A stretch of 64,000 nucleotides of DNA from Thecamonas trahens ATCC 50062 (Eukaryota > Protista > Apusomonadida): contig NW_013657640.1 in the NCBI RefSeq assembly GCF_000142905.1, positions 123,208 through 187,207 of the forward strand, read 5' to 3'. Made by a program: the position numbers and the translations under genes. Below are positions 22,257-44,211 of this stretch, piece after piece. The stretch's first letter is position 1; every line of letters starts with the position of its first letter. The notes below the pieces were generated by a model. The model saw only the letters and a program-made list of their open reading frames with translations, searched no databases and was not told where the DNA came from.

Positions 22257-23774
22257 ATGCCACCCATCCACCCGCTGCTGGCGGCCGTGGCTATGGCTGT
22301 AGTCTGCCTCGTGCTCGCTATGGCCAGCCCGCCACCCGCTGCAGGCGCCAGGCACTCGCTGGGGACTACTGATGCTGTGGAGTATGCTGCACAGGTGGAA
22401 GCTGCGGCGGCTGCGGCGGCTGCAGGGGCAGCGGCGGCAGCAGAGGCGTCCGGTGCGCGCACTACGTCATCGCTGGGGTCTGGAGACTGGCTTGCTGGTG
22501 CAGGGACAACTGGCGAGCCGGAACAAGTCCACGTTGCGCTCACCGGCTTCCCGCATGCCCTCCGCGTCATGTGGGTCACCTTTGGTGGCGCGGGCGCAGG
22601 CGCAGAGGCTGCGTGGGGCACGGCGCCGGGCGTCCTGGCTGCTACCGCCCGGGCCAATGCATCGACATACGACGTTGGCATTCTCGGCGGCTGGCACGGC
22701 ACCATTCACACCGTAGACATGGTCTTTCCTTCCCACCTGCCCCCACGGACGACGGTCTACTACGCGGTCTCGGGCACCTGCCCCACCGCCTGCTGGTCGC
22801 CGGTCTTTTCAGTCGCGCTACCGGCGGCGATCGGAATGGAGACGGCAACCACGCTCGCACTGTGGGGTGACATGGGGACGGTCATTCCTGACGGCTGGCG
22901 TGTTGCCGCCGATGTGGCTGCCGCGGCCCGTCGCGCGGATGGGGCCTGGAACGCTATGCACATTGTCGGCGACTTGGCGTACGCCGGCATGGGCGCCCAC
23001 GATGCTTGGCAACCGATCTGGGACATGTTTGGCCGCCAGATGCAAGACGCCGCAGTCCAGGTGCCGCTCATGGTTTCGGTCGGCAACCACGAGGAGTACT
23101 ACGACTTTGAGGCCTACGTCAAGCGCTTCTCGGCTCCGGGAGCCGTCCTCACTCCTGGCGCCAACCGCCACTTCTGGTACTCGTACGAGGTCGGCAACAT
23201 CCATGTCACCTCGATGTCGACTGAGCACCCATACCTACCGGGCACGCCGCAATACGCCTGGCTCGCCGCCGATCTCAAGGCTGTTGACCGCCGCCGCACC
23301 CCGTGGCTTGTCCTCGTCTCGCACCGTCCGTTTCTTGCCTCGGACGCCTTTGAGCACACCGCCCACATCCCCGGCGCACCGCTAGTTGACTCTGTCGGCC
23401 GACTTGCGGCTGCGGCCGGTGTTGATCTTGTTGTCTCGGGCCATTGTCACGTGTACGAGCGGACGCTGCCGACGCTCCCGTCGGGCGCCGTCACCTCGCA
23501 CGGCGCCGCCAACGGGACCGTCTTCCACGCCCCGGGCGCGCCCATCTGGATCGTCGCCGGTACCGGCGGCGCCATCTACCCAGACTCGTGGGTCGTCCCC
23601 ATTCCACCTTGGTCCGCCGTTCGCATCCACAAGCTCGGCGACGACATCGTGTACGGCTACGGCGTCGTCTCCACAAACGCCACTGCGCTCGAGTGGACCC
23701 TTCATCGCGCCGCCCACTCCAGCTACCCCGGCGGCCCCAGCCACATCCTCGACCGCTTCACACTCATCCGGTGA
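22257..23774 (+). CDS. Secreted purple acid phosphatase (FN3-like N-domain + metallophosphoesterase)
   Basis: Signal peptide; PEQVH; GDMG, GDLAY, GNHE, SHRP, GHCH-x-YER. Confidence 0.93.
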   Translation: MPPIHPLLAAVAMAVVCLVLAMASPPPAAGARHSLGTTDAVEYAAQVEAAAAAAAAGAAAAAEASGARTTSSLGSGDWLAGAGTTGEPEQVHVALTGFPHALRVMWVTFGGAGAGAEAAWGTAPGVLAATARANASTYDVGILGGWHGTIHTVDMVFPSHLPPRTTVYYAVSGTCPTACWSPVFSVALPAAIGMETATTLALWGDMGTVIPDGWRVAADVAAAARRADGAWNAMHIVGDLAYAGMGAHDAWQPIWDMFGRQMQDAAVQVPLMVSVGNHEEYYDFEAYVKRFSAPGAVLTPGANRHFWYSYEVGNIHVTSMSTEHPYLPGTPQYAWLAADLKAVDRRRTPWLVLVSHRPFLASDAFEHTAHIPGAPLVDSVGRLAAAAGVDLVVSGHCHVYERTLPTLPSGAVTSHGAANGTVFHAPGAPIWIVAGTGGAIYPDSWVVPIPPWSAVRIHKLGDDIVYGYGVVSTNATALEWTLHRAAHSSYPGGPSHILDRFTLIR

Positions 23775-24188
23775 TATTTCATAGTTTCCAACTGCAAACA
23801 CTCTTCCGCCGTCAGACAGGCCGCGCGGCCCAGCCAGCTGCCATCGATCCGGGGCCAATCGGTCGTGCCGCTCCGCCACGACGGCCAGCCAGCCAAGCCA
23901 ACTAGTCAGCCAGCCAGCCACCCCCCACCACGGGCGCACCCACTCCCACGGGCACCCCACTCCACCCTTCCCACCCCCCACCCCCCACCCCCCACCCCCC
24001 CACCCCCACGCCAAAACCGCCCCCTCCACCCCACCCCCCCCACCCAGGTACGCCCTGCCGCCTCCCGCTGCCCGTTGCCGGTGCCTGCCTGCGCCCCTTC
24101 CCCGAAGCCTCCAACGAATTTTTGCCGGTGGCAGACCACCCCTCTCACACCCGTCCACCGCCCCCTCCCCCTCCCCCCCACGCACAGC

Positions 24189-26444
24189 ATGGCGGACCAG
24201 ACACTGGGCATCTCGTTTGCGGCTGCAGAGCCCCTGGATGACTCGGACTCGGACGAAGGCGTCGTGGCGCATGTGGCTGACGAGGACGACTCGTCGTCGG
24301 ACCCGCTGTCGTCCGACGACGACGCTACCGAGTCGGACGACGGCGACGGCGGTGATGGCCGCGACGGCGACGGGAGCTCAGCAGTGCTCGGCATCTCGTT
24401 CTCGTCGGCCGCTGGTGGCGACGGCGACGGCGACGACGACGGTGGCGACGACGACGACGACGACGGGCTGCCGGACTCGGACGCCGACGATTCGGACGAG
24501 GAGCTGTCGGACGATTCGTACGACGAGGACGGCCTGGTGCTTGTGCTCAAGTACGGGGCGCACGGGCTGACCGGGCGGCGCAAGACGATGGAGGACGCGC
24601 ACTTTGCAGCGGTGCAGGCGTCGCAAAAACTAGAGACGGCCGAGACGCAGGGCGGCCCTGCGGTGGGCTTTTTCTCAGTCTTTGACGGCCACGGCGGCGA
24701 CGCGTGCGCGCTGTATCTCTCACAGAACATGTTCCCCGCAGTGTTGGAGACGATGCCCGAGCTGGCGATCCGGACCAAGGAGGTTGACCCGGAGAGCCTC
24801 CCGTCGCAGGCCGAGGAGCTGCAGGCGATGGAGACCAGTCTCCGCGAAGCGTACGCGCTCGCCGAGTCGCGGTTCATCTCGCTTGCCGAGAGCAAAAACG
24901 TTGATTCAGGTGCGACAGCCGTCTCTGCCCTCATTCATGGCAACAAGCTCGTGGTTGCCAACGTTGGCGACTCTGAGGCTGTGCTCTCGCGTGATGGCAT
25001 GCCTGTCAACCTGACAGTCATCCACAACCCGGCCAAGAACCCGGCCGAGGAGGAGCGAATTGTGGCTGCCGGCGGGCGGGTGTACAAGAAGCGGGTGGCG
25101 CTACCGTCGGTCCCGCCGCACCTGTGCAACATTGCAGTCTCGCGGGCGTTTGGCGATATCCTGTTCAAAAACACGCCTGACGGGACAGCGTCGGGGCTGA
25201 CGGCGGATCCGGACGCAGCCACGTGGCTCATTGAGCCGCAGGATGAGTTTCTCATTTTGGCATGCGATGGGGTGTGGGACGTGATGACACACGAGGAGGC
25301 TGTCGACGAGGTGTCATCGAGCCTTGCGGCGTCGCAGTACGACCCGCAGGCTGCTGTTGAGTGCCTGGTCAAGGCGGCGTACGCGCGCGGCTCGACCGAC
25401 AACATCACTGCGCTGGTGGTGCTCTTCGAGTTTGTGCCCGAGGAGGACCTTCTTGAGCTGCTGGAGGACGACCCGAGCCCGCCGCTGGCGCTGGATGTCA
25501 ACGGCGAGCCCGCGAGTACCGAGTTTGAAGGCAAGGTGAGCGAGCTGCAGGCGCTCGGTAACGGGTTCTCACCGGTCGCGCCGGTCCACCAGACCGGGAC
25601 TATCAAGCTTATGCCGCGGACGGCGGCGGGCCCGTCGACGCCGACCGCAGGCGGATCGGGCATTACCTTTGCGGCCACGGGAGCAGGCTCGGACTCTGAC
25701 GACGGTGTCTCGCCGTTTGGCGTCGACTCGGACGAGTCGGGCTCTGACGACGAGTGGGACGAGAAGGCGCTGTGGCCGGGCAAGCTCGCGGCTTACACCG
25801 AAGAGACACCACTCAACGGTGCGCAGCGCAACGTGCCGGGCACCAAGCGCGACGAACTGTTTGCATGGAAGGCCGCGCCGCTCGAGGAGCAGACCGGCTC
25901 GCTTGAAGTCCAGCAGTACCTGCAGCAGCTGATCCGGAGCGACCCCGCAGACGTGGACAAGATTGTGGAGACGCCCGAGGGCGTGTCGTCGGTGGTGTGG
26001 CAGTACGAGCACCTGCGCCAGCTGACACTCGAGCTCTCGCATCTGGCAGTCATGCTGGAAGAGTGCGGGTGCTCGCCCGAGTCGTGCCCCAAGATGAAGG
26101 CGACTCAAGAGTGGATGTTCCTCTGCGCAGCCCACAAGGAGCCGCAGGAGTGCTCCGCCATCGACTACATGTGCCACACGCTCGAGGGCGCCGCCGCGCT
26201 GCTCAACTCGCAAAAGTACTTCCCCTCGCGCATCAACCTCAAGGAGGCCGACGCCAAGCCGAACCTCCAGTCGGTCGCCCGCCGCCTCTATCGTATCTGC
26301 GCCCACGCCTTCTTTGCCCATAACGACGCCTTTGAGGAGTTTGAAGCCGAGACGCACACTACCGAGCGCGCCGTCAAGCTCGCTGCCCGCTACAAGCTTG
26401 TTGGCCGCAAGATGCGCATCATCCCGCCTGTCGAGGAGTGGTAA
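24189..26444 (+). CDS. PP2C (PPM) phosphatase fused to C-terminal MOB4/phocein domain
   Basis: PP2C: GRR-x-x-MED, VFDGHGG, ANVGDS, VSRAFGD, LACDGVWD, DNIT. MOB4: RNVPGTK, VQQYLQQLIR, VWQYEHLRQ, WMFLCAAH, AIDY-x-x-HTL, KYFPSR, RRLYRI. One uninterrupted frame. Confidence 0.9.
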   Translation: MADQTLGISFAAAEPLDDSDSDEGVVAHVADEDDSSSDPLSSDDDATESDDGDGGDGRDGDGSSAVLGISFSSAAGGDGDGDDDGGDDDDDDGLPDSDADDSDEELSDDSYDEDGLVLVLKYGAHGLTGRRKTMEDAHFAAVQASQKLETAETQGGPAVGFFSVFDGHGGDACALYLSQNMFPAVLETMPELAIRTKEVDPESLPSQAEELQAMETSLREAYALAESRFISLAESKNVDSGATAVSALIHGNKLVVANVGDSEAVLSRDGMPVNLTVIHNPAKNPAEEERIVAAGGRVYKKRVALPSVPPHLCNIAVSRAFGDILFKNTPDGTASGLTADPDAATWLIEPQDEFLILACDGVWDVMTHEEAVDEVSSSLAASQYDPQAAVECLVKAAYARGSTDNITALVVLFEFVPEEDLLELLEDDPSPPLALDVNGEPASTEFEGKVSELQALGNGFSPVAPVHQTGTIKLMPRTAAGPSTPTAGGSGITFAATGAGSDSDDGVSPFGVDSDESGSDDEWDEKALWPGKLAAYTEETPLNGAQRNVPGTKRDELFAWKAAPLEEQTGSLEVQQYLQQLIRSDPADVDKIVETPEGVSSVVWQYEHLRQLTLELSHLAVMLEECGCSPESCPKMKATQEWMFLCAAHKEPQECSAIDYMCHTLEGAAALLNSQKYFPSRINLKEADAKPNLQSVARRLYRICAHAFFAHNDAFEEFEAETHTTERAVKLAARYKLVGRKMRIIPPVEEW

Positions 26445-26539
26445 AGTGCTTTTTCGTTTCCTGCCTGCAGCCGGTCGAGCCCTGCCTCGCTCGCAAGCCG
26501 TGTTGCTGGCTCCTGTTTACGGCAGTGTCTTGTTGAGAG

Positions 26540-27726
26540 TCAAAGAAAGTAATCGGGCACCTGCTTGGCCTGGCCCGACGGCACCTCACGGCGGTCCTCG
26601 GGCGCAGCGGAGAAGACGTTGAACTCGCGGTTGAGCGAGGCGTCGATCTCGCAGATGGACGCCACGTTGCCGCAGCGGTAGCAGTAGTTGGGCGCGGACC
26701 AGACGGTGGCCAGCAAGCCGTCAAAGTGAATCTGGTAGCCTTCCATGCACAGCTGGTGGGCGCGAAGGACAGTGGAGAGGCCGTTGACGTGCAGGAAACG
26801 CTCGACGGTGTCTTTGCCGAACAGATGGCCGGCGTTGCGCTGTGAGAGGTTGAATCCGTCACGGTCGGACGGATCCGACCACAGCAGGTCAGCAAAGACG
26901 CCCTCGGACGGCGGCTCGCGGAAGCGGTCGATGAGCTTGATCTGGTCAACCGAGAGCACCGCCGGCGAGAGCCCACCGTGGACACAGAAGATCTTGCCGG
27001 CAATGATGGCCGAGAGCGGGAGGTAGTCAAAGACCTCGCAAAAGTACGACCAAACGTCGGCCGACCCGTACTTTTGCACGACCTCTTTGTAGAACCCGTA
27101 CACTTGTGTAATCTGCCGCGACTCGTGGTTGCCGCGCAGCAGCGTGATGCGGTCCGGCCACCGGAGTTTGAGGCACGTCAGCAGCGTGATCGTCTCCAGG
27201 TTAAAGTGCCCGCGGTCCACGTAGTCGCCCAGAAACAGGTATCGCGTATCGGGGCACTCGCCGCCGATCTGGAAGATCTCCAGCAGATCGTAGAACTGAC
27301 TGCAGTATCCAGCCGCGATACCGTTACCGTGTTGTTGTGTCGCACCCCGGCTGTCTGTCAGTGGCGAGCCGTCTCTTCTACCCGCCCCCCCTCCCCCCCT
27401 CCCCTCCCCTCTGCGCCCTACCTACCAACCTTCTGCCCACCGCTATCCCACGACAATGCCCACGGCCACCGCCCCCCATCCCCCTCCCCCCCCCCCTCGC
27501 CCCTCCCTCCCTCCCCCTCCCCCCCCCCCCCCCCCCCCCCCACCCCTCCCCCACCCTCAACCTACCCATGGACGTCACCCACAACAGTCACCGGCGCGTC
27601 GACCTCGCACACGTTCGACTCGTCCAGAAGGACGTCAATGACCCGGGTGCAGATGTCCTTGATCGTTGCCTGCGACAGCAGCTCGCACCGCTTGAGCTTC
27701 TCCAGGCACTTGTCCACGTCGTCCAT
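26540..27726 (-). CDS. PPG1: PP2A-family Ser/Thr phosphatase catalytic subunit, Ppg1-like; complement(join(26540..27299,27566..27726))
   Basis: GDVHG|QFYD across a GT-AG intron; [24 protein letters not shown]-terminal [16 protein letters not shown]-x-IDRFRE and AHQLC-x-EGYQI-x-FDGL resemble yeast Ppg1 more than PP2A/PP4/PP6. Confidence 0.85.
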
Positions 27727-27869
27727 GCCTCCCCCCCGAACGCCTGACAGAGCCAAGTGTTGCTCGCTCCCCTCCTCCCTCATTTCAATCCACAGGCTCA
27801 GCAGTGCTGAGCATGTCTTGCGGCAAGACATCGTTTATCACTTTACATCCAGGGGCCGGCCGTCTCCAA

Positions 27870-30497
27870 CTACTGACCCTGCTCCGAGACGGCAAGCGCA
27901 GAGCCGACAAGGCCGTTGGCGGTGTTGAACAGGTTGACCGGCGAGTTGCCGTCGGTGAGGAGGACAGACGAAAGGCCGAGCGAGCCCAGGAGCTTGGCCT
28001 GCATCTCGGGCCCGGCCTTGGCAATGTCCTTGATGACCTCGGGCGTGATGGCCTCGATCATGGCCTTGAACTTGCCGGTCTCGATCTCGGTCAGCTGGGC
28101 CTTCTTGTCGAGCTCGAGCTTGTTGAGTGCGGCGACGTGGGTGAGCTCGGCGGCGTAGTGGGCCTGCAGCCGCTTGAGCTCAAAGGCAGCCTCGACGTCT
28201 GCGGCGTCTGCACGGAGCTGGGCCTGCTCGACACTGGCCTCGCACTCGATGACGGTGGTGGTGGCCTGGGCCTTGGCCTCGGCCTTGGCCTTGCCCGTCG
28301 TCTTGATCGACTCGCACTCGGCCTGCAGCCGGAGAAGCTCGATCTTGGCAGCCTCGGAGAGGCACGAGTCGCGGATGCGGAGCTGCTCGAGCTCGCCAAG
28401 CGCGTCCTGCTCCTCTCGCTTGGCGACGTTGCGCGCCCGCGCTTCGAGCGCGTCGGTGGTGATCTCGATGGCGAGCGAGACCGACTTTTGCAGCGAGTCC
28501 CGCGTCCGCTGGTCCACGGGGTCAACGTTCTGGATGTCGACGTTGGTGATGACAAGGCCGTTGGCCGGAAAGACCCGCTCGTCGCAGACCGAGCCATTGT
28601 CGTCGAGGCCAAAGACGGCTGCGCGGATGATACGTGCCGAGTTGGCGTGGAACTCCTGGAACGGAATCGAAGCCACCGTGCCGCGGATTGACGAGCCGAG
28701 CGCCTTGCACGCGTCGCCCACAAAGTCGGCAACCGAGAAGATCTTGCGGGTCGAATCCTCCGTCGACCGGTCGACACGGAACTCCCAGTTGTACCCGAGC
28801 TGAAGCGAGAGGCGTGCATGGTCCGACGTCTCCACCACGATGACGTCGATCATAAAGTCCGGGCCAAGGTAGAGGAGCAGCGACTTGATGGCGTTCGACT
28901 GCTTCGGCCGCCCGCCCGAGAGCGAGAAGACCGTGAGGTGCTCATTCGGCTGGAGAAGCACCAGCTCTGGGCCAAACACCACCCGGGCATCCTTGGTCTT
29001 GTAGTCAAAGATCTGGACCGCTGCGTTGTGCGGGACACGGTAGGTGACAACCCGCCACTTTTCGCGCCGCTGCATGCCTGTCAGGCCAGCCGCCCGCGAG
29101 CCGGTCGACGCAAGGTTGAGGATCGTCGACTGCAGGCCCGGCGTGCGGCTTGCAGACGAGGAGAACAGCACGTTTGAGCCGGCAGCAAGCTCGACCGGGG
29201 TGTCGGTGAACGGCGTCTCACCGTTGATGAGCGCCTCCATGTCGGCAGGCAGCTCCTTCTCCCACAGCTCCTCGTCGGCCTGCAGCATGTACGACGCGCC
29301 GATCTCGGCGCGCACCTTGCCGGTCGTCATGTTGCGGACGTACACGCCCTCGTTCTTGTCGAGCGGAATGAGCCACCGCTGCGCCGCCACACTGCATTGC
29401 GGTGCTGGGTAGTAGTCGCGCGGCCCAAAGACCATCCACCGCTCACCCGGCTCCCGCGCCACGCCCTCGTCGTCCACGTACGCCTCGACACACCGCAGCA
29501 CTAGCGCGTCCTGCTTCGACAGCAGGTGCGCCGTCTGCTTGCCGGCAAGCAGCCGCTCGCCGGGCTGCAGGAAGAACGTCTTGGGCCCTCGGACCATGGT
29601 CTTGGTTCCCAGCACGTTCTTGCCGGTCGACGCGTCCACAGGATCCACAATGACGCAGTAGTCGGTGTTTGAGAGCGAGATCGCCGTCACAGGCGTCACC
29701 AGCTGCTCAAAGACCCCGAGCATGTGCGTCGGCGCCTCGGCAAGCGTCACCAGCCACTCGTCGCCGACCTTGCGCTCGATGCCGTAGACATCGGTGAAGG
29801 CTTGCGTTGCGCGCAGGTGAAGGCCCGTCGTCTCGGTCAGGACATGCAGCTCCTGCACCTCGACAAGCTCCTCCGTTACCCGGCACAGGTATCGCCCCGG
29901 CTGCCGCACAATCCACTCGGAGCCAGCAAGCCGCGCCGTTCCATCCGGCTCGGTAAAGTCCTCCGTCGCCCGCAGCCGCAGCGCCTGGGTCTCGAGCACC
30001 ACTACAGAGTGCACCTCCTCCAGCACCGTCACCACCCGCGACGGCAGATACGTCCGCGGGCCCTTGACCAGCCACTGCTCGCCCGCAGCACGCGTCACCC
30101 CACCCTCGTCCTTCACCTCGCGCTCCGCACGCACCCGCAGCGCAGCGCCGTCCTCAATCACGCGCAGCGGCGTCACGCCCAGCACAAGTGCCTCGCCCGG
30201 GTACAGCGGGAACGGGTCCGGAAAGTCGGCCGCAAGCCGCACCTCCTCGTCACCCCACACGCACACGTAAACCCCGTGCTCGTCAATCACAGGCTGCCCG
30301 GCGTCATCACGCTCCACAGGATTGGCCACCACGCAGTACGACGCCGGCGGCAGGACAATCATCGCCAGCGGGCCATCCACCACGGTCTCATGTGCCTTCT
30401 TGGTGAACGTCGCTGGGCCAACCACCAGCCGCTGCACATTCGTGTTGTTGTCCTCCACCGTCACATACGAATACGGCCGGATGCGAATGAGCGACAC
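27870..30497 (-). CDS. MVP: Major vault protein (5' exon or start unresolved)
   Basis: Vault repeats ([10 protein letters not shown]-x-EWLV, FFLQPGE); shoulder LGPDFM-x-D...[16 protein letters not shown]; cap helix SLQKSV-x-LAIEITT; C-terminal GPEMQAKLL...[13 protein letters not shown]-x-GL. Confidence 0.96.
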
Positions 30498-41470: not shown

Positions 41471-41920
41471 NNNNNNNNNNNNNNNNNNNNNNNNNNNNNN
41501 NNNNNNNNNNNNNNNNNNNNNNNNNNNNNNNNNNNNNNNNNNNNNNNNNNNNNNNNNNNNNNNNNNNNNNNNNNNNNNNNNNNNNNNNNNNNNNNNNNNN
41601 NNNNNNNNNNNNNNNNNNNNNNNNNNNNNNNNNNNNNNNNNNNNNNNNNNNNNNNNNNNNNNNNNNNNNNNNNNNNNNNNNNNNNNNNNNNNNNNNNNNN
41701 NNNNNNNNNNNNNNNNNNNNNNNNNNNNNNNNNNNNNNNNNNNNNNNNNNNNNNNNNNNNNNNNNNNNNNNNNNNNNNNNNNNNNNNNNNNNNNNNNNNN
41801 NNNNNNNNNNNNNNNNNNNNNNNNNNNNNNNNNNNNNNNNNNNNNNNNNNNNNNNNNNNNNNNNNNNNNNNNNNNNNNNNNNNNNNNNNNNNNNNNNNNN
41901 NNNNNNNNNNNNNNNNNNNN
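41471..41920. other. Assembly gap (Ns)
   Basis: N run. Confidence 1.
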
Positions 41921-42028
41921 CCCCCCCCCCCCCTTTTTTTCCCCTGGCTGGTATTCGCGCCCAACGGCCTCACCCGGCTACCCCTCCCGCCACAGACCGC
42001 ACATAGCCCCACACTCCACTCCACTTCC

Positions 42029-44211
42029 ATGCTCTCTGCGGCTGCAGTGTACGAGGTATGCCACCATCTTCCGTCCCCCTCCTCCTTCTCCTCCTCCTCC
42101 ACTGCTTCCTTTCCACACCACTCACGCCGCTGCCATCGCCAGGACTCGGAGGAGAGCCGCCAACGGAGAGCTGCTGTCCTTGCTGCCCACGGACTGCCAT
42201 CGGGGGAAGACGCAGAGTCACGCAGGCGGAGAACGAGCCATGCTGTAGCCACGCCAGAGCTGCGGCCGAGGTCTCTGCCGGCGGCGGCGGCGGCGCGTGC
42301 CACTCCGCAGCCAACTCGTCGCTTCCATCAGCAGCAGGCCAGGCAGCTCTCGCGCCGCCGCACCCCGCTCCCGCAGCAACAGCCGACTCCGGCCCCTGCT
42401 CGCTGTGAGGAGGAGGCATCAGACCTGGCCCCCGAGCTGGATGCCGCGTATGGTGCCATCCGCGCGAGGTATGCCCCTGATGATCACGATGGTGAGCCGG
42501 CCGGTCAGCTGCAGGCCATGCTCGACTCGCTGGAGCTGTCGTCCATCGACCCGGCCTTGTTCTCCTCGCTCGACGAGCGCTCGGCAAAGCTAGCTGCCAT
42601 CCAGTATTCACCGCCACGTCCTGCAGTTGCAGGTCTGGCGCTTCCGGAGCGGAGAGTCCCGCTTCCGTTTGTGGGCACGGTCTCGCTGCCGCTCCGCGCC
42701 ACGGTTCCGCTCCGCGAGAGCGATCCATCCCCTCCCCAGTCGCAAACGCCGCAGCCTGCACGGCCGACATTGCGTTTGCAGCAAAGGCACCAGCCAACGT
42801 TGCCGCTGTCAGTGCCAGCAGCATGTCAGCCGAGCGTGGGCCGGCACCGGGCCACCCCGACCACCCCACCATGGAGGAGCGGTTTGACGCGCGCAACAAG
42901 GCATGGCGTGAGGCCCGCGCTGCCCGCGCCGCCGACCTCGAGGCCGACAGCTTTGGCACGCTTCGTGGCCCACAGCTGGCGCCTGGCACTCGCAAGCTTA
43001 TGGACAACCGATCGTCATTCAGCGACCGCTATGACGCGTGGCTGGCGAGAACGCGCGCACACGCTGCGGCTGTCGAGGCTGAGAAGGCGGCCGCCACCCG
43101 CGCGCAGGCCAACGTGTCCAAGATCACCGCTCGCTCACGTAAGCTTGCCGCCCATGTTCCGTCAGTGGCGGAGCGAACAAGTACTGCTACCGGGCGGTCG
43201 AGCGCGAGTTTGGTGGCATCGTCGTCGGTTGCCGGCGACACGACCATGTCGGAGGCGTCCGCTTCGGTCGTGGACTTGCCGTCGTTCCGGCCTCAATTGA
43301 GCAAGAAGACCAAGCAGCTGGCAGCCAAGCGCGCCGCCGCAGCTGCCAGAGAAGGCCGTGCCGTCGACGTCGTCTCGCGCATCGAGGCCTCGGCTGCCGA
43401 GCAGGCGCGTCGGCGCACCGCCCGCGAGGCCGAGGCGCGCCGCGCTCGCGAGGCCGAGTTTGCCTCGGCCCATACCTTTAAGGTTGAGCGGGAGGCCGTT
43501 GTGCCGAGCAAGAGCGACAAGCGAGCCAAGGCTCGGACTCGGCCGCGGGCTAGCGTCCGCGGCAAGTGCGCACCCTCGGCCCAGAGCAGGCGTCGCACCA
43601 AGCCGGAGCACAAGAGCCCAAAGCCGCACGTTCACTTTGAGGACGAGGGCAATGACAACTGCGGTGGCGATGACGGTAACGATGGCGGTGACGACGATGT
43701 TGCACCAATTGTTGCCCCAGCGCCTGAGGCCGCTGCGCCCGAGCCGATCCCGCAGCCAGAGCCAAAGCTGGTGGCCACGCCAGTCCCGCAGCGAGTCCGG
43801 CACAGCCGTGATAGCGAGCGCAGCCGTGGTCGCGGGCGTAGCCGGGCCCGCACGAGCGGGCAGCTTCCTAGTCGGTGGGGAGCGCCGGTGCCAGCAAGCG
43901 AAGCGGGCTCCAAGCCTACCAGCAAGCCGTCGCGGCTGGCGTCCGAGTCGTCCTCGGTCGACACTGAGGTGCGGATGGCGCGGCAGGCGCAGGCCGCCGC
44001 TGCAACTATGCGCCCTGCATTGGGCGCCACAAGTGCGCGGGGCAAGAGCTCGCGGAGTAGCCGGCGGCGGGTCGAAGAGCAGGTAGTCGTGCCACGATGG
44101 GGTCCCGCGGAGAATGAGTCCGTCGACGCGAGTGAGCCGGAGCCGATTGTGGTCTCGTCACGGGTGGCAGCTGTGGATCGAGACTTTTGGCGGTCGATGG
44201 GCCGACGGTGA
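42029..44211 (+). CDS. Uncharacterised low-complexity/coiled-coil protein; probable frameshift between 42600 and 42750
   Basis: ORF 42029.. reads as coding up to LAAIQY, then coding signal continues in ORF 42823..44211 (SFRPQLSKKT-type motifs). Confidence 0.5.

Follow-up and report, generated by a model that had tools for sequence, protein, structure and literature searches.

Within a 64,000-nucleotide stretch of the genome of Thecamonas trahens ATCC 50062 (hereafter the window), a gene that fuses a PP2C phosphatase domain to a MOB4/phocein domain (gene A) lies tail-to-tail with a gene for a Ppg1-type catalytic subunit of the PP2A family (gene B). The fused copy is the only phocein in the genome, and the pair points to a STRIPAK complex (striatin-interacting phosphatase and kinase) that may carry two phosphatase chemistries. 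T. trahens is an apusomonad, a close outgroup to animals and fungi, and the window is C40:123208-187207 of its 28.7-Mb assembly, which has 131 contigs and in which contig C40 measures 338 kb. STRIPAK is a conserved hub controlling Hippo/MST kinases, cell fusion, and development; its known forms use one phosphatase chemistry, that of PP2A-type enzymes. Our favored reading, to which we assign a probability of roughly 0.6, is that MOB4 docks the PP2C onto the striatin/STRIP scaffold beside the PPP-type subunit encoded by gene B, that gene B would act as the general PP2A catalytic subunit, and that the two genes are neighbors through neutral linkage. The first-pass annotation had described a MOB4-containing gene and a PP2A-family catalytic gene that converge with stop codons about 95 bp apart. 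Reading the sequence confirms the convergent layout, with gene A on the plus strand and gene B on the minus strand, and sets the spacer at exactly 95 bp. The features are as follows, in window positions, where "both species" refers to Thecamonas and the marine relative described below:

24189..26444 (+): gene A, complete coding sequence of the PP2C-MOB4 fusion, 751 codons plus stop in a single uninterrupted frame, with both Pfam domains
24189..24548 (+): gene A N-terminal stretch (residues 1-120), acidic and of low complexity, whose two G-I-S-F motifs are invariant across both species
24549..25406 (+): gene A PP2C (PPM) catalytic domain, residues 121-406, PF00481, with metal-binding motifs intact
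25407..25949 (+): gene A linker, residues 407-587, about 180 aa, with conserved short motifs, purifying constraint, and matching RNA contigs
25950..26411 (+): gene A MOB4/phocein domain, residues 588-741, PF03637, with a match to human MOB4
26445..26539 (no strand): spacer between the convergent stop codons, exactly 95 bp, read from the sequence
26540..27299 (-): gene B exon 2, carrying the third base of Gly54, then 252 codons and a stop, with the Metallophos domain; the protein ends in ...VPDYFL
27300..27565 (-): gene B intron, GT..AG, with splice sites read from the sequence and an RNA contig spliced across it
27566..27726 (-): gene B exon 1, Met1 through codon position 2 of Gly54, with GDVHG, read from the sequence

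As judged from sequence comparison, gene A is a conserved translated protein and no mis-joined pair, because it forms one open reading frame in two species with dN/dS of about 0.2 and a linker under constraint. The second species is a marine relative recovered from Tara Oceans and other marine assemblies (P0122). Its protein has the same architecture at 740/742 aa and is 65% identical overall, and dS between the two is 1.3-1.5, with synonymous sites saturated. The start ATG of gene A is backed by a matching N-terminus in the relative, MA..LGISF. Constraint extends to the linker, which is 57% identical between the species and keeps the motifs LDVNGE, KLMPR..GPSTPT, GSGI(T/S)F, and LWPGK; its proportions of nonsynonymous and synonymous differences (pN 0.33 and pS 0.73) mark it as translated sequence under constraint. 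The same 180-aa linker is what could suggest that separate PP2C and MOB4 genes have been misread as one, being of low complexity and having no Pfam match. We consider such a misreading very improbable, since the frame runs free of stops for 751 codons in Thecamonas and for 740/742 in the relative, selection on the linker is purifying, and metatranscriptome contigs with one mismatch each cross both domain-linker boundaries (25306-25589, from the end of PP2C into the linker, and 25743-26040, from the linker into the MOB4 domain). Furthermore, no unfused MOB4 of stand-alone size exceeds 54% identity among 5.8 billion proteins. Among proteins of 413-1316 aa, both Pfam domains occur together only in gene A and its marine counterpart. 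A search of metagenome contigs with the fusion alignment returned no further relatives of the fusion and was swamped by generic PP2Cs at about 30-35% identity. Two long MOB4 proteins (P0123 and P0127) were considered as hidden fusions and ruled out, as they have only the MOB4 domain in common with gene A and are without PP2C.

The PP2C domain matches Pfam PF00481 over residues 121-406 with an E value of 2.6e-54, covering profile positions 2-255 of 255. In PPM enzymes, the motifs RxxMED, DGHGG, DGxWD, and xDN carry the metal-binding aspartates. Gene A has the full domain with all of these acidic motifs in the forms RRKTMED, FDGHGG, DGVWD, and STDN, each invariant between Thecamonas and the marine relative, so the domain is probably active. 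Its pN of 0.21 and pS of 0.63 were measured between the same two species. Among solved structures, PPM1B and PPM1A come closest (E 2e-30), and the domain is generic and PPM1A/B-like. Outside the PP2C domain, three G-I-(S/T)-F motifs lie near acidic tracts and are kept in the marine relative: LGISF at 24204-24218 (residues 6-10), GISFSS at 24390-24407 (residues 68-73), and GSGITF at 25653-25670, the first two being invariant between the species. These motifs may serve in docking.

The identity of the MOB domain is clear from its matches. Mob1_phocein (PF03637) covers residues 588-741 with an E value of 2.5e-32, and comparison with human MOB4 (7k36_H) gives an E value of 6.6e-65 across chain residues 13-213, against 1e-9 for MOB1 and 1.8e-5 for MOB2. 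The earlier assignment of the domain to the phocein type is thus borne out. Similarity to human phocein already begins near residue 548, the top stand-alone matches carry the names phocein or MOB4, and the domain is 80% identical between Thecamonas and the marine relative. The three other MOB genes of Thecamonas are MOB1-like, leaving the fused copy as the sole phocein.

A search of the genome for striatin and STRIP, proposed in the first-pass annotation as a check on the STRIPAK idea, recovered both and SIKE as well. The striatin gene is on the same contig as gene A, about 104 kb before it (C40:41606-43756, L042 2607-4757), which makes it a third STRIPAK gene there; two short exons with PF08232 at 41606-42054 are followed by an open reading frame with WD40 repeats (E 6.6e-45). 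N1221 and DUF3402 of STRIP are both matched at C29:139531-141335, and a SIKE-family gene lies at C23:191640-191999 (59 bits). At the STRIP locus (L034) the frame changes between N1221 and DUF3402, and the long open reading frame continues into low-complexity, out-of-frame text; the change is an intron or an assembly frameshift. With a scaffold of this kind available, the MOB4 domain would dock gene A on striatin/STRIP, in the manner of MOB4 within the core of human STRIPAK, and docking would tether the PP2C next to a PPP-type catalytic subunit, most probably gene B. The PP2C would be part of STRIPAK because the genome has no other phocein. A complex prediction for the 200-aa striatin segment that precedes the WD40 repeats and the 204-aa MOB4 domain scored 0.01, which is evidence neither way. 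The fusion could instead act outside STRIPAK, with MOB4 as an adaptor that brings PP2C to Ste20-like (MST/GCKIII) kinases or other phosphoproteins without striatin. MOB proteins are kinase adaptors, MOB4-MST4 complexes have been described (PMC7761452), and the conserved short motifs of the linker and N-terminus would suit such a role. We nevertheless regard action outside STRIPAK as unlikely, given that animals and fungi alike have phocein in the core of STRIPAK (PDB 7K36; PMC10423325) and that Thecamonas keeps striatin, STRIP, and SIKE without any other phocein. Within the favored reading, a joint complex of both gene products with dual chemistry is a reasonable hypothesis.

Gene B (27726-26540, minus strand) encodes a 306-aa PP2A-family catalytic subunit and has one intron. 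Exon 2 matches Metallophos in Pfam with an E value of 5.9e-35. The exon model has the same length as P0001, named serine/threonine protein phosphatase [Thecamonas trahens ATCC 50062], and the exon 2 match is 100% identical; analyses of the whole protein used P0001, and the others used exon 2. A 249-nt seawater metatranscriptome contig matches 27568-27729 and 27215-27300 with 0-1 mismatches, and because it joins these two segments the intron is spliced out. Exon 1 is further matched by the start of an intron-less, more distant relative (L043) at 67% identity, and in the marine relative, too, gene B is interrupted at this position by an intron of the same phase. On the coding strand the Thecamonas intron is very G-rich, with long runs of G and GGGA. 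The intron at that site in the marine relative (L012, about 1200-1776) is longer and contains GA and CA/CT simple repeats. Genes A and B are both real and expressed. Across positions 23800-28000, contigs 99-100% identical to Thecamonas genes were also seen in seawater, marine, and subsurface metatranscriptomes; at this identity, T. trahens or a very close strain is active in those habitats. The spacer at 26445-26539 had no RNA contig depth in the metatranscriptome runs that were compared with the region.

Ppg1-type enzymes are the PP2A-like catalytic subunit of Far/SIP/STRIPAK complexes in fungi, and the placement of gene B among them is well supported. A careful maximum-likelihood tree of 47 rows (LG+C20 by PMSF, rooted on a PP1-like gene of Thecamonas, with sequence names taken from their sources) places gene B and two relatives as a 100/100 trio within a 100/100 clade whose stem is 0.41 long. 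A quick tree gives the Ppg1 clade an SH-aLRT of 100. PP4 (with the Thecamonas gene on C12), PP6 (with the one on C46), and canonical PP2A (with bird PP2Ac-beta and plant PP2A-3) form separate clades, so that gene B falls outside PP4 and PP6, either of which would have counted against the original assignment. Constraining the trio to canonical PP2A costs 55 log-likelihood units (approximately unbiased (AU) test, p 0.00017), and of 14 alignment positions at which the clade differs from PP2A, PP4, and PP6, gene B shows the Ppg1-type residue in 11. These results bear out the description of the catalytic gene as Ppg1-type. Gene B ends in DYFL without the RRGEP..TRRTPDYFL tail seen in the canonical PP2A sequences compared, and by clade and tail together it is no canonical member. 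A six-frame search with gene B found only two close paralogues, a PP4c-like gene (C12:65623-66402, 61% identical to gene B) and a PP6c-like gene that ends in TPYFM (C46:216191-217018, 59%). It could still be argued that gene B is a fast-evolving canonical PP2A, PP4, or PP6 whose likeness to Ppg1 is artefactual: it has the generic DYFL tail of the PP2A family and all PPP motifs, and the automatic names of its close matches are mixed ("PP4", "PPG1", "PP2A B"). An artefact of this kind is already largely refuted, and we give it almost no weight, in view of the 100/100 support, the agreement of the quick and careful trees, the AU test against union with PP2A, the 11 clade-specific residues, and the presence of separate PP4 and PP6 orthologues in the same genome.

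The Ppg1 clade is broad. From fungi it includes Fusarium PPG1, Rhizophagus "Ppg1p", Pneumocystis, Saitoella, and others, and Fonticula is also a member. So are Dictyostelium discoideum pho2B (DDB_G0283187), Cavenderia, Ceratiomyxa, Balamuthia, Endostelium, and Pellita, and further members are Pygsuia, Mantamonas, Diphylleia, Gefionella, Pharyngomonas, and Ancoracysta. Besides fungi, the groups represented are Amoebozoa, CRuMs, breviates, malawimonads, Discoba, and Fonticula. On this evidence the clade of gene B is an old paralogue branch distinct from PP2A, PP4, and PP6 in many protists and fungi, and the "fungal" Ppg1 belongs to a fourth branch of PP2A-like enzymes that is widespread and probably ancient. 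At 306 aa, gene B is without the internal 10-residue insertion and the C-terminal extension of about 50 residues found in S. cerevisiae Ppg1; because most members of the clade are 305-320 aa long, these additions are a yeast peculiarity and do not define the clade. According to a 2019 review, Ppg1 occurs in fungi and seems to be missing in humans and plants (PMC6506691), and our literature search found no relevant paper on protist members. The expectation that gene B would place the subfamily outside fungi is therefore correct in substance, though Thecamonas is not what shows it, as the branch is widespread in protists and pho2B was already in databases.

The remaining PP2A-type genes of Thecamonas bear on what gene B may do. 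Two six-frame searches of all 131 contigs, one with gene B and one with bird PP2Ac-beta, did not find a canonical PP2A catalytic gene. The full-length matches to canonical PP2A catalytic subunit (PP2Ac) are PP4 at 68%, PP6 at 60%, and gene B at 59%, and beyond these lie more distant PPPs. A match on C14 (56% to PP2Ac over 200 aa) was examined as a PP2A candidate and rejected, as it is a PP1 with an intron. B56 regulatory subunits are encoded at C8:546023-547237 (573 bits) and at two weaker loci. Because no canonical PP2Ac was found and B56 is present, gene B may fill the general catalytic role of PP2A in Thecamonas, serving B56 as well as striatin holoenzymes. Such dual service is biochemically conceivable because yeast Ppg1 has been reported to interact with Tpd3 and Cdc55 (PMC6506691). 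Alternatively, a canonical gene may exist and be missing from the assembly, with gene B as a STRIPAK-leaning paralogue as in fungi. The assembly does have gaps, with runs of N in L042, and both types are kept in fungi and Dictyostelium. Canonical PP2Ac is also held to be near-universal. Against a missing gene stands the recovery of full-length PP4 and PP6 from 131 contigs in which nothing exceeds 68% identity to canonical PP2Ac, and the sole other candidate, on C14, is a PP1. We judge a missing gene to be rather unlikely, with somewhat more in its favor than action of the fusion outside STRIPAK. If the apparent absence of canonical PP2Ac in Thecamonas is true, it would be unusual for a free-living eukaryote. 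A bolder proposal, which we make tentatively as one more doubtful than probable, is that the apusomonad STRIPAK is a dual-chemistry machine in which PP2C is tethered through the sole MOB4 and the ancient Ppg1-type enzyme has entirely taken the place of canonical PP2Ac, working in B56 holoenzymes as well.

The arrangement of the two genes is a separate matter from their products. The marine relative also has its fusion and Ppg1-type genes tail-to-tail, 42 bp apart, in four independent contigs, and the 42-bp spacer is unrelated in sequence to the 95-bp spacer of Thecamonas. In the short contigs of this relative, tblastn found no match to either neighbor of the Thecamonas pair, major vault protein or purple acid phosphatase, or to gene B exon 1, which lies outside the 1.7 kb available. 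The sequence comparison indicates that the adjacency is inherited within a small apusomonad group. One possibility is that it is functional, with expression coupled through overlapping 3' ends or a common chromatin domain such that two subunits of one complex are produced together. The persistence of the pair in a relative at dS 1.3-1.5 speaks for coupling, as do the location of striatin about 104 kb off on the same contig and the low chance of any two STRIPAK genes being adjacent, p of about 0.004 by a rough post hoc estimate (about 11,500 genes, 7 STRIPAK genes, and 21 pairs). The genes converge without a common promoter, however, and a spacer of 42-95 bp that is not conserved in sequence leaves scant room for a harmless breakpoint, so conservation of the pairing is also expected under neutrality. 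We accordingly see functional coupling as improbable, and the adjacency is most simply neutral linkage protected by a very short spacer, with no regulatory device.

Several points weigh against the favored reading, and the first two tell equally against functional coupling. The next relative lacks the pairing (P0006), and its Ppg1-type protein is 71% identical and sister to the pair in the tree; its contig may derive from RNA, and the convergent neighbor there, 110 bp downstream (L043 1201-1731, minus strand), encodes at least 176 aa with no Pfam match and no similarity to MOB, PP2C, or gene A. In Fonticula and Cavenderia, no MOB gene lies within 10 kb of the Ppg1-type gene. The physical linkage suggested for two putative subunits of one complex is kept in one diverged relative and absent in P0006, Fonticula, and Cavenderia. 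The MOB4 domain might act apart from striatin. A general PP2A role for gene B may make its position beside MOB4 less specific, and a canonical PP2Ac could sit in an assembly gap, in which case gene B would be a dedicated paralogue as in fungi. The argument from the gene pair is weak. Most interesting are that the sole phocein is fused to a PP2C, that the Ppg1 branch is so broadly distributed, and that canonical PP2Ac may have been lost.

Two further genes flank the pair. Gene A is preceded directly upstream by a gene for a purple acid phosphatase (22257-23774, plus strand; Pur_ac_phosph_N, Metallophos, and Metallophos_C), and the resulting row of three phosphatase genes, which are unrelated or distantly related, is probably a coincidence. 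On the other side, a complete major vault protein gene with Vault repeats and shoulder domain (27870-30497, minus strand) ends, with 143 bp left between it and the gene B start codon.

A sole MOB4 welded to an intact PP2C, in a lineage close to animals and fungi, is a natural experiment. The fusion suggests that a MOB4 module can incorporate PP2C activity or direct it to its targets, and it gives a concrete hypothesis that is testable in other organisms. Under the bolder proposal, the fusion taken as a "Rosetta stone" would predict a functional link between PP2C and MOB4/STRIPAK in other eukaryotes, for example on MST/GCKIII kinases, that has so far gone unrecognized.

Comparison with known systems places each part of the pair. 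PP2Cs of the PPM1A/PPM1B type are alike in full-length fold and in all metal-binding motifs, with distant similarity (E 2e-30), and the environmental PP2Cs closest to gene A are about 34% identical to its PP2C domain. Neither the search for proteins with both domains nor the literature turned up a known PP2C fused to a MOB domain. Human MOB4/phocein, a member of the STRIPAK core (PDB 7K36 chain H; 5YF4), aligns over almost its whole length at about 50% identity, and the Cys...Cys and His...His positions of its zinc site fall inside the alignment. Known phoceins stand alone at about 210-280 aa, whereas in Thecamonas MOB4 makes up the C-terminal third of 751 aa that also include PP2C and the conserved linker. 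Gene B resembles the canonical PP2A catalytic subunit (PPP2CA/B, Pph21/22) at 59% identity, with the same PPP motifs and the ...DYFL end, and yet belongs to a different clade. Dictyostelium pho2B, named protein phosphatase 2A catalytic subunit B (DDB_G0283187), is a 312-aa member of the gene B clade; over exon 2, identity to a close dictyostelid cluster-mate reaches 65%, and our literature search found no published function for pho2B. Fungal Ppg1 (S. cerevisiae Ppg1, S. pombe Ppa3, and N. crassa/F. graminearum Ppg1) falls in the same 100/100 clade at 62-64% identity and has the DYFL tail. Of these, the S. cerevisiae protein has the internal insertion and the C-terminal extension of roughly 50 residues (PMC6506691) that gene B is without. 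Fungi keep Pph21/22 beside Ppg1, whereas gene B appears to be the only PP2A-proper catalytic gene of Thecamonas. The STRIPAK of F. graminearum and N. crassa has Ppg1 as its catalytic subunit and includes the phocein Mob3 (PMC10423325), and in S. pombe the striatin Csc3 binds Ppa3, the Ppg1 equivalent (PMC6506691). By homology, both products likely join a striatin scaffold in Thecamonas.

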